Assembly: GCA_002269645.1 (NCBI GenBank)
Contig: NIVC01000138.1
Location: 84,442-148,441, forward strand
Length of the DNA: 64,000 nt
Source of the DNA: Macrostomum lignano
Lineage: Eukaryota
Direction of reading: 5' to 3'
Position numbers and translations under genes: made by a program. Shown here piece after piece: positions 10,401-13,400 of the stretch. Position 1 is the stretch's first letter; every line of letters begins with the position of its first letter. Below the pieces are notes generated by a model. The model worked only from the letters and a program-made list of their open reading frames with translations. It ran no database searches and was not told the origin of the DNA.

Positions 10401-13400
10401 AGCCGCAGCAGCACGTGACTCACAGAATGCAGTGCATTATTCACTTCGGCGTTAAGCTGCGACGACCCATGGGTACGGCGGACGGATGGCACACGGCGTC
10501 GCTTCCAAGTGGGTTGTTTATTGAAGTATTTCGACAGCCTATAGGCGATGAGCATCCGAAAGTCTCCTGCCTTGTTGCCACTCGTGGAGTCGAGGCAACG
10601 TCTTTTAGGTTCCAGCGCGTGGAGACCATCAGTGCGACTGCAACAGGTGTTGTACTGACGCTGCGTGAGCTGCGTGTGCAGGACGTCGAAATCGATCCTC
10701 TGGAGATGCTGTGTGCCGTGCCGAAGGAGTCTGCTCACCGCGGTTGCCGATTCGCACATGTCAGGCGGCTCCTCGCCGATCCTTTTGGAGTCGCAGAGTA
10801 CCTTGGTGAAGTCAGGCAGGCTGCACCGGAGGACATCGTCGGCGCCTGCGTTGTGTCAAACACAAAGATTACTTAGCTTCCTTATGCGCAGTTTGGCTTT
10901 TCTTAACAAATATTTTTAGTCATGCTGCGTCCCATGCAATTTAATTTTGCGTACATCCTCTATATGCATACATTTCGCGTCACTGATTTTAGTGCGGGCC
11001 TCGCTATATCACGCTCGTATGCTGGTTCATCTGCTAAACTGCACTTGTATAGAAGTATACTGTCTTGCTTGCTCCGTCTGGGCAATCGCGAATCTGAACT
11101 GCAACTGTTTTGTGTCCATATTTTTGAGTAACTATTTTTATTTAATTACGTCCGTACGGGTGAGAAAGAGGATACCACCGCTGATACGAGCTGTAACAGG
11201 CGTTATGGTCCTGTCCTTTTAACTATCCTTTAAGCTGCCACCAAAGTTGTAACAGATCTTTTGCCTCTGTCTGATAATTTTACCTATTTCCTAGAATTTC
11301 ATTCAAATACTTTCTGGGTAGCGTTTCTGGTAGCGTTTCTGGTAGCGTTCTGGTAGCGTTCTGGTAGCGTCTTATGTATTGGCCTGAGCGGTCTTAGTAC
11401 TGGTACATGTATTAGTTTGCAGTCTTAATCGGGCGTTCGCCAAGATTAGAGGGTCACGGTACAACTCTCTCTGAATCCTCTTTGTATATTATCCCACTCC
11501 CTTCTCTTAGTTAGTTTCTGAGCACTATTACTCTCTCTCCTTGAAATAACTAACTCAATAATTATAGAACCAACAGTCTACCATAGGCACTAGCAAAACG
11601 AATTATTAAGGTATTACAGAGACATACGAGTATAATAGGCACTGGTACATTTATGTCAATTAAAAAATTATTGCTCATTAACCCAACTGCAGCGAATGTC
11701 GAGCAAACCCAAGCGAGCGAGCGAGCAGGCCGTCATCGACTGGTCCAAGTTGCTCGATACTGTCATTCCAGATTCCGTGCTTGGTGACCTCGATGACCGC
11801 TCCAGTGGCGACGAGACCACGGTGGCTGGGTCGCCGCCGCCAAAGTGGACTCCTGAGGTCTCACCCGACGGCGACGTTATGTCACCGTCATTGCTGGGTC
11901 CGTCGTCCCCTGTCGCATGCAGCACGCAAGCTGCATGCAAAGAAGGTCCTGGCTACTCCGTCCTGCCATCGTCGCCATGTCTGCCTAGCTCTAGCGCAAG
12001 CCTTCAACAGCCCGGCGCAGGTCGGTACACCCTAGAAGACTATAACAGACTGCCTGACGAGGCCCCCCCATCTTATGAGTCGCGCCGCCGAGACGAAAGA
12101 AGACGCCTACCTGCCCAGTGCTGTCCAGACTGTGCAGATTGGTATGGGGCTCTGCCCCCAGAAGAACGGGACAGGCGGTTGCAGAGTCATGGTCGTCACC
12201 GGCATCGTACAATCCTGCAGGCCCCGAACTTCTTTGCCATCGACATGCCACCAAGCCCGCCGCCTGCTCCCCTGGAGCACACGAAGGTCGGCAAGCGTCG
12301 ACGGCGCCCTCTGCGCGACATATCCGTCTTCCGAAAGAGGCCCCCCAGAAGAAGCCGTGAGATCTGTAGTTACAATGGACTGCTAAGCGGGGACAGGCTT
12401 TTCTATTTTAAAACTAAAGAAGTATGTTTCGTGAAGTTATGAAGTAATGAAGTAATGGTGAACTTCGAATGCTCCCGATCCAACTGTCGCAAGAGCTCTG
12501 CTTCCATCTTTTGTGCCGCGACTGCCTTCTGCTGCAGAACTTATATCGAAACTTTATCGAACTTTTATGCAAAATACATTAGAGGTTGGCCCTCTGTGCA
12601 TGTGCAATGCAACGTGTGTCAATTTTGTTCTCTAAGATGTTTCCAGACATTTGTTTCATTACTTTCTTTCATAACATTGCGTCCTAAGATCTTTAACGCT
12701 TGTGGTCTATGGGGTTGTAGTACAAAACCTTTTAGTTTTAAGAATGCTCTTAACTCCTTTCTCGTCTGTGTAAAAAGTTTAGTACACTAACTAAACGCCA
12801 CCTCATTAACCTCATTAATGAAAAGATTAACGTCACCTCATTAAGAAATTTCTGATGCTGTTCTGCCCCAAAGCAACTCTGGTTATCTAAACGTCTTTCC
12901 AGAGCGACTATGCATGAAGCCACCGCACGTAAACGCACCGCAGCAAAACAGAAAGCCGACATGCCGGTCAAACGACACCGCCCAAGTGTAAAAAAGGTAG
13001 CGGCCAAGGTCTCTTTGGTGGCTTGCAAGAAAGGGACGGCTGCAAGGGAGACCCAACCGCCAGATTCTGCGGCTACTGTTCTGCAGGCTGGCTTGACGGC
13101 TACAGGTGACACCCAACCGCCAGATGCTACAGCTACTGCACTGCAGGCTGAGGTGACGACTGCAGGTGACACCCAACCGCCAGGTGCTACAGCTACTGCA
13201 CTGCAGGCTGAGGTGACGACTGCAGGTGACACCCAACCGCCAGGTGCTACAGCTACTGCACTGCAGGCTGAGGTGACGACTGCAGGTGACACCCAACCGC
13301 CGGATGCTGCGACTACTGCTCTGCAGGCTGGCGCAACAGCTGGAGGTTGCAATCCGTCGCCTGATATGGTGCCGTACAAAGCAGAGAGGACGCAGCGATA

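Follow-up and report, generated by a model that had tools for sequence, protein, structure and literature searches.

The locus described here raises the question of whether a cut-and-paste transposon can carry its own cofactor domain for the Mre11 nuclease. The window, the whole 64-kb stretch of Macrostomum lignano DNA that was analysed, contains an element at positions 6643–16417 in which an intact open reading frame (ORF) resembling the C-terminal domain of CtIP/Sae2/Ctp1 lies among the genes of a DNA transposon. This interval is very probably a young insertion of the CMC clade whose third cistron encodes an N-terminally truncated, anciently diverged CtIP paralogue. The ORF and its domain are located as follows:

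11696–12442, plus strand: CtIP-like ORF, ATG to TGA, 248 residues, intact.
12020–12325, plus strand: CtIP/Sae2/Ctp1 C-terminal domain, ORF residues 109–210.

The coordinates and frame of the ORF are exactly those given in a first-pass annotation of the window, and every motif of the CtIP/Sae2/Ctp1 signature listed there was found: RRRDERRRL at residues 130–138, CxxC (C143-P-D-C146), LPPEERDRRL, RHR (R167-H168-R169), NFF (178–180) and SP (187). CxxC and RHR sit in invariant alignment columns, and a basic tail that was missing from the earlier list (KRRRRPL) is present at residues 200–206. Given the base composition of the ORF itself, the probability of an open frame of 248 codons is about 2.8e-4. 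Only residues ~110–210 match the 481-residue M. lignano CtIP (P0007) in BLASTP; no homology was detectable for residues 1–109, a disordered, S/P-rich segment with six S/T-P sites. An N-terminal likeness to CtIP in a MAFFT alignment ('TVIPDS') was attributed to chance, as BLASTP gave no support.

An exhaustive phmmer search with the ORF against 1.84 billion protein representatives gave six matches, all aligning at CtIP-type C-termini: a CtIP-like hypothetical protein of M. lignano (P0001; E 5e-22, 56% identity), a metagenome protein (P0002; E 2e-13), three vertebrate RBBP8/CtIP proteins (E 2.6e-4 to 8.4e-4) and a short fragment (P0003). The ORF alone was also aligned by hhalign with a vertebrate-only CtIP C-terminal profile at a probability of 96.7% (E 4.4e-10). 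These results bear out the domain identity first proposed, and, judged from its sequence, the segment of residues ~110–210 is a true CtIP/Sae2/Ctp1 C-terminal domain. A word-indexed homologue search and a PDB sequence search with the ORF returned no match, a word-indexed search with a four-sequence CtIP profile returned P0003 only, and a metagenome scan for CtIP-profile relatives and a viral-contig scan confirmed nothing. Look-ups by exact protein sequence found no record of the ORF, of accessory exon A or of two candidate host ORFs. A decayed-looking CtIP-like C-terminal domain was seen at positions 524–900 of a Logan contig from SRR31628425 (L002). It has 'C-ADW' and 'LQ-HG-HR' in common with the window ORF and an in-frame stop at the NFF position, past which the frame goes on as ...DLGPDQPE...PRKRRRIPLRS; it is probably a decayed CtIP-like copy, to judge by these letters.

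The boundaries of the element that contains the ORF are defined by the following features:

6643–16417, plus strand: complete DNA transposon of 9775 bp in a 15-bp satellite, recognised by its terminal inverted repeats (TIRs), internal genes and a colinear sister element.
6643–6676, plus strand: 5' TIR, 34 nt, CCCGCCTGGCTGTCGTAATCCGGTTTTCATCCGG, complementary at 34 of 34 positions to 16384–16417.
16384–16417, minus strand: 3' TIR, 34 nt, in perfect pairing with the 5' repeat.
6641–6642 (left) and 16418–16419 (right): target-site duplication (TSD) of 2 bp, TG, placed by the satellite register.
6677–7000: 5' subterminal repeats with CCGGA/TCCGG motifs, 47.5 motifs per kb.
15864–16383: 3' subterminal repeats, 78.9 CCGG motifs per kb.

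The element is flanked by a long 15-bp satellite, (GGACATGGGATATTT)n, at 6500–6642 and 16418–~16800, with the left flank more degenerate. Removal of the element and exactly two bases brings the satellite back into register, with 142 of 148 positions matching as against at most 100 at other offsets; therefore, the TSD is 2 bp, TG. Away from these ends, both inside the element and across the rest of the window, the subterminal motifs occur at a density of 1.1–1.5 per kb, and about five 61-bp tandem units, with copies 91–97% identical, occupy 15864–16198. Self-BLAST of the 64-kb window revealed no second copy of the element. The perfect 34-nt TIRs and the 2-bp TSD confirm that the ORF lies inside TIR-bounded DNA, as had been claimed.

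The name EnSpm, which the first-pass annotation gave to this DNA, holds at the level of the clade. Both the window transposase and that of the sister element (P0008, encoded on contig L001) display the CMC signature (DDE, C(2)C, H(3)H; criteria from PMC12730594), with the catalytic residues of the transposase assigned by motif pattern, and the 2-bp TG falls in the 2–5 bp range of the CMC(T) TSD. On these sequence features, the element is a CMC-clade transposon. Strict EnSpm/CACTA elements end in CACTA or CA..TG and have a 3-bp TSD. In the window and in L001, the termini are CCCGC...GCGGG (CC..GG), and the TSD of the window element is 2 bp; strict EnSpm/CACTA identity is therefore not shown. 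A Pfam scan of the two transposases, with the CACTA models included, gave no match at E<=1.

The genes and associated signals of the element interior are arranged as follows:

7923–10876, plus strand: transposase gene (likely start ATG 7923; main ORF 8502–10367; stop 10876).
11687–11692, plus strand: CTGCAG, a match to the spliced-leader (SL) trans-splice acceptor, 3 nt upstream of the CtIP-ORF ATG.
12357–12362, plus strand: GTGAGA, candidate splice donor at the end of the CtIP homology, phase 1, in frame with exon B.
12456–12546, minus strand: inverted copy of the exon B start (13932–14022), 80 of 91 nt identical, with sharp bounds.
12910–13741, plus strand: accessory gene exon A, with an acceptor motif 7 nt before its ATG.
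13882–15011, plus strand: accessory gene exon B, coding for a coiled coil and a conserved C-terminal region.

The ORF was originally placed between a transposase and a BEN gene. The transposase is indeed upstream and a conserved gene is downstream, but the BEN label was not confirmed, as neither the window nor the L001 accessory protein matches Pfam BEN (PF10523) at E<=1; the conserved C-terminal region of exon B is BEN-like by eye only. In M. lignano, ~30% of genes are trans-spliced and operons are present, with [T/C]TNCAG as the trans-splice acceptor motif and GT[G/A]AG as the cis donor (PMC8629364). The three element genes point the same way, less than 1 kb apart, and each has an acceptor motif close to its start (3 nt from the ATG for the CtIP ORF and for ATG 7923, 7 nt for the accessory gene), a situation found within 12 nt for only 4% of window ATGs. 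The same acceptor-before-ATG layout recurs in L001. Acceptor layout and co-orientation together suggest that the acquired ORF has the expression architecture of the family. The M. lignano SL sequence itself was not found in the window (best 21/35).

The acquisition of the ORF can be followed by comparison with L001, a 10.2-kb Tara Oceans contig that is a complete relative of the window element. L001 has 33-nt TIRs starting with CCCGC and subterminal repeats of the same kind, and its transposase is likewise followed by accessory exon A and then exon B; no clean TSD was seen on this contig. The interval between the transposase and accessory genes is 994 bp in L001 versus 2033 bp in the window, and the ORF is absent from L001, so that it represents a lineage-specific acquisition and not a core gene of the group. 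The inverted 91-nt duplicate begins 14 nt past the CtIP-ORF stop codon, contains a stop codon, and differs from exon B by six non-synonymous and four synonymous codon changes. Its sequence marks this duplicate as a rearrangement scar such as template switching would leave, now decaying as non-coding DNA. The ORF would thus have been acquired by an ancestor of the family after its split from the L001 lineage, leaving the 91-nt scar, and the captured segment may have been either DNA or mRNA. Two specific routes were considered. A nested transposon was rejected, since no TIR/TSD pair brackets the CtIP segment. As to a retrocopy, no poly(A) tract follows the ORF, and the homology does not extend beyond what is one exon in M. 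lignano.

M. lignano also possesses a separate CtIP locus, which answers the first-pass worry that the ORF might be the sole one. The host gene (P0007/P0001) has three exons, lies between the acetyl-CoA synthetase (ACS) and EMP24 genes, and encodes an N-terminal coiled coil. It occurs at two homeologous loci, L003 (NIVC01000176.1) and L005 (NIVC01002929.1), which are 87–98% identical over 23 kb with the same flanking genes; intron 1 contains a large tandem array at about 10470–11480 of L003. The transposon ORF corresponds only to the domain in the last exon of the host gene. Its nearest relative in the CtIP family is the M. lignano protein (PAA88737.1/PAA54340.1), with 55% identity over ~105 residues. 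The ORF shares CxxC, RHR, NF, S/T-P and a basic C-terminal peptide with CtIP/Sae2/Ctp1 (RBBP8) C-termini in general, and the lineage-specific YTLxDYNxLP and QAPNFFAI-MPP with M. lignano CtIP; it keeps S-P where vertebrates have S-T-Q and flatworms T-P. In contrast to host CtIP, it is transposon-borne, consists of a single 248-residue frame, and is without the four-residue 'xxVV' ahead of the RRRDERR motif. No N-terminal coiled-coil or tetramerisation region was found in the ORF, and no upstream exon was identified. The window has at least three short repeat families in common with two M. lignano loci, and a similar GC content. In the best of these families, the window copy is 90–93% identical to the M. 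lignano copies, which, as paralogues, are 88–91% identical among themselves; the window copy thus falls inside the diversity of the family, as would suit an origin in M. lignano or a sibling species.

Comparison of the ORF with the M. lignano CtIP exon gave a proportion of synonymous differences (pS) of 0.81, which is saturated, a third-position identity of 34%, and a non-synonymous divergence (dN) of 0.41. Since the synonymous divergence (dS) is saturated, no dN/dS figure is given, only that dN is much smaller than dS. When 17 invariant columns were defined among five other CtIPs with the ORF left out, the ORF was found to retain 15 of them, as against 44 of 85 variable columns (52%; Fisher p 0.004). 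The two departures are E to A and T to S, the latter retaining the S/T-P site. In simulations, the frame survived 0.1 neutral substitutions per site with a probability of 0.11 and 0.2 with a probability of 0.015. Neutral decay, which would have spoken against the first-pass annotation, was not seen in these measures; by its sequence the ORF does not look neutrally decayed, and it is real accessory cargo that has probably been selected. The constrained path may lie partly in a distant flatworm host lineage, so selection while on the transposon is not proven.

Cut-and-paste transposons rely on host repair of double-strand breaks (DSBs), both for healing of the donor site and for copy gain from an element-bearing template. 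Against this background, it is tentatively proposed, with somewhat less than even confidence, that the transposon family acquired a stripped-down CtIP module and kept it under selection as its own regulator of Mre11-Rad50, to open and resect ends or to shield them. The ORF would be expressed like the other genes of the element, from an SL-trans-spliced or operon-type transcript, and its product would work as a monomer, binding both DNA and Rad50-Mre11. It would act on the ends made by transposition and license the Mre11 endonuclease at those of the donor site, which would be capped by hairpins if cleavage by CMC enzymes resembles that of the related Transib/RAG1 and hAT enzymes. The opened ends would be resected and the gap filled by homologous recombination from the sister chromatid or the homologue, with the outcome that the element is restored at the donor site and gains in copy number. 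That the ORF product promotes donor-end opening and resection, and so favours copy-restoring homologous repair, is an equally tentative suggestion by analogy with these systems.

Several published findings make the individual steps plausible. The catalytic motifs of CMC enzymes are common to Transib/RAG1 (PMC12730594), and after hAT excision the flanking DNA ends in hairpins; in yeast, no revertants were recovered when Mre11 or Sae2 was missing (PMC3299998). The isolated Sae2-like domain is a monomer that binds DNA, with a contribution of RHR to the binding (PMC11317151). The same domain has been modelled on the 'S' surface of RAD50, and a 15-residue C-terminal peptide of Ctp1 stimulates the MRN complex in vitro (10.1101/2023.03.25.534200).

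Other observations weigh against the reading as a whole or against parts of it. The match to Pfam SAE2 (PF08573), the check suggested in the first-pass annotation, fell short of the gathering threshold of 19.8 bits for both the full ORF (14.2 bits, E 0.094) and residues 105–221 alone (16.8 bits, E 0.015). The M. lignano host protein fails as well (14.3 bits) and P0002 passes (37.6 bits); because the host protein fails, the model is considered to fit the Macrostomum lineage poorly. The equivalent of the human cyclin-dependent kinase (CDK) site T847 is absent from the ORF (QAPNFF), as it is from the host protein, which has the same QAPNFF; T-P is present at this position in P0002 and vertebrates, and the Sae2 counterpart is S267. 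The ORF is known from one element copy. L001, the sole sister element found, contains no CtIP-like trace (tblastn best E 0.58), and transposition in this group therefore does not need the ORF. The transposase of the window copy has a 1-bp frameshift near 10313–10321, with a frame-2 continuation to 10876 when P0008 is taken as the reference (GSR|R.V in the window versus GSRLIDIEIV in P0008); this copy is either non-autonomous or affected by a 1-bp assembly error. The saturated divergence could predate a recent capture, having arisen in a host lineage, in which case horizontal transfer would be involved. As to mechanism, hairpin formation by CMC transposases is presumed by analogy. In yeast, Pso2 and not MRX-Sae2 opened most Ac/Ds excision hairpins (PMC3299998). 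DNA bridging needs the N-terminal tetramerisation domain, which the ORF is without (PMC11317151), and one paper names tetramer assembly in its title as a requirement for resection and repair.

The strongest alternative, judged somewhat less likely than the main reading, is that the ORF is a passive passenger: a fragment of the last exon of CtIP caught by template switching during gap repair, in the manner of Pack-CACTA/Pack-MULE transduplication, of no benefit to the element and intact only because little neutral time has elapsed on the transposon. The absence of the ORF from the sister element, the representation of only part of the host CtIP gene, the scar directly adjoining the ORF, the 109 N-terminal residues without homology and the frameshifted transposase would all suit such a history, and capture of gene fragments by CACTA-type elements is well documented in plants (PMC6379663 and PMC8903248). 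However, Pack-type elements are non-autonomous, whereas the window element retains transposase and accessory genes. Synonymous sites are saturated, with dN low relative to the CtIP of the presumed host, and the present host gene was therefore not the source of the ORF in recent time. The preferential retention of invariant residues also argues against a passenger, as does the ATG of the ORF, which is in the same acceptor context as those of the core genes. Furthermore, the 248-codon frame is unbroken beside a scar that has diverged by 12%, and the first 109 codons, which are non-homologous, are likewise open (P 0.027).

Distinctly less probable is a decoy or dominant-negative role, in which the domain would take the place of CtIP on Rad50, or sit on the DNA ends, but fail to support full resection, so that the excised transposon ends or transposase-bound ends are shielded from MRN cleavage or donor repair is pushed towards end joining. 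The ORF has no N-terminal coiled coil, the isolated domain is monomeric and does not bridge DNA (PMC11317151), and Rif2 MIN and TRF2 iDDR are short motifs that inhibit MRN via the same RAD50 surface (10.1101/2023.03.25.534200). The missing T847-equivalent site would also fit a decoy, but this loss is not diagnostic because the host protein shows it too. Stimulation of MRN in vitro by the Ctp1 C-terminal peptide alone (10.1101/2023.03.25.534200) argues against this role, as does the retention of the whole domain in the ORF, including the basic tail.

It is very doubtful that the CtIP ORF serves as an alternative 5' exon of the accessory gene, with 12356|GTGAGA as its donor and exon B joined at 13882. 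The CtIP homology ends exactly at the donor-like site, which is phase-compatible, the joined frame would give an open product of 596 residues, and no AATAAA or ATTAAA signal occurs between the ORF stop and the next gene; such a fusion would tether an MRN cofactor to the subterminal repeats through the coiled coil and putative DNA-binding region of exon B. The phase match is nevertheless a 1-in-3 chance, and the exon side of the donor (GCC|GT) fits the consensus poorly. Finally, an artefact, whether a mis-assembly that put the CtIP locus of the host inside a repeat of this very repeat-rich genome or a chance ORF, is scarcely credible in view of the perfect TIRs and a TSD that restores the flanking satellite, flanking genes colinear with the independent element L001, a host CtIP located elsewhere with introns, an N-terminal coiled coil and only 55% identity, and the low open-frame probability given above.

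The window transposase is 50% identical to P0008, which is intact at 863 residues, and the two have the motifs CSDGF, FDAPARAD, C-DK-C and H-LRG-H-E in common. The N-terminus read from ATG 7923 resembles that of P0008. The region 7923–8700 codes for an acidic N-terminal region in a frame other than those of ATG 7923 and the main ORF, with a duplicated 'SHTGDDGEEP / DDEEDDNEDG' block; introns, a tandem duplication or both are likely in this 5' part, as far as the sequence can indicate. A model of the transposase core predicted with AlphaFold from a two-sequence alignment was too poor for use (predicted local distance difference test, pLDDT, 31.6), and a metagenome scan for transposase relatives confirmed nothing.

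In the accessory gene, the intron 13742–13881 is bounded by GT..AG and is in frame, and exons A and B together give an open product of 653 residues. The C-terminal part of exon A is kept in L001 ORF 7509–8237 and exon B in L001 8575–9342. The single-sequence model of the accessory C-terminal region was too poor for fold comparison (pLDDT 53.7). Exon A contains four to five 60-bp tandem repeats at 13035–13347 that code for 20-residue units (TGDTQPPxATATALQAEVTTA) and are not present in the homologue of the sister element. A conserved stretch, YFLFQYDD...GPF...C-SCK, extends over 13400–13741 of the window and 7900–8180 of L001; it has no Pfam match and, by eye, could be a small beta-rich (Tudor/SH3-like) domain followed by CxxC.

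Elsewhere in the window, short interspersed repeats 78–93% identical to M. lignano loci are found at 24203–24379, 20554–20626, 28828–28946, 43331–43419 and 59658–59719. ORFs that resemble, by eye, fragments of Tc1/mariner-type transposases lie at 55640–56377 (plus strand) and 26695–27315 (minus strand), e.g. ...ILPPYSPFLNPVE.... Host gene fragments lie at 44264–45388 (minus strand), 35404–36009 (plus strand) and 40948–41424 (plus strand). One of them is Ribosomal_S2/RPSA-like (Pfam E 1e-18), and the others, by eye, recall exons of a beta-carbonic anhydrase and of ICMT. Very long simple satellites are interleaved with the host fragments at 17.5–18.4, 21.3–22.2, 38.5–39.7, 44.1–44.9 and 49–53.5 kb. 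An Rfam scan of the 64-kb window found no RNA genes.

If the CtIP-like ORF is selected cargo that regulates Mre11-Rad50, the element would be a case of a transposon that itself sets the DSB repair pathway in the germline or stem-cell lineage of an animal. Which host factors decide the repair choice, and whether elements can influence it, is usually approached through the host; with an element that brings its own CtIP-type Mre11 cofactor, the question could be put to a direct test, as one transposon could be assayed both in the presence and in the absence of the 248-residue gene. The ORF would also supply a natural minimal CtIP, consisting of the domain only and evolving apart from the host protein, from which it could be learned which parts of CtIP suffice for MRN regulation in vivo. 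Such experiments are feasible in M. lignano, a regenerating model organism open to transgenesis, in which both stem cells and germline are accessible. Should the ORF prove to be a passenger, the locus would still be a clean animal example of gene-fragment acquisition by an autonomous-looking CMC element.

Full-text literature searches found no earlier description of a transposon-borne CtIP/Sae2 domain, in agreement with the first impression that no DNA transposon with such cargo had been described. What is new is the CtIP/Sae2 cargo; extra host-type genes on DNA transposons and gene-fragment capture by CACTA elements were already known. The Pack-CACTA/Pack-TYPE elements of plants are similar in that a CACTA-related element has taken up a portion of a host gene and shows a rearranged junction. 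Pack elements are non-autonomous, however, and their fragments are usually decaying and often chimeric. The window element, in contrast, has kept its transposase (with one frameshift) and accessory gene and so departs from the non-autonomy of Pack elements, and its fragment comprises an entire domain, has an ATG and an acceptor of its own and an uninterrupted frame, and is anciently diverged with a low dN.

Cargo related to repair or replication is known elsewhere, as RPA70-like genes in Helitrons and an XPG-like nuclease in Academ. As in the window element, a homologue of a host repair or replication protein presumably acts on the element's own intermediates; the transposon class and the protein are different, and none of these proteins is known to regulate Mre11-Rad50. 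Fungal transposons bearing TET/JBP dioxygenase genes (Kyakuja-Dileera-Zisupton, Plavaka, EnSpm and ESTA; PMC12730594) are similar in having a host-type gene beside the transposase, the CMCT clade included, and in comprising related lineages with and without the cargo (PMC12730594). Their cargo, spread over many families and species, is an enzyme of DNA modification, whereas that of the window element is the domain of a DSB-repair cofactor, seen in a single copy in one animal genome. The RAD50-binding inhibitors of MRN (Rif2 MIN, Taz1 and TRF2 iDDR; 10.1101/2023.03.25.534200) offer a model for a decoy, since a small module would engage the same RAD50 surface; these motifs are not CtIP homologues, whereas the ORF is.

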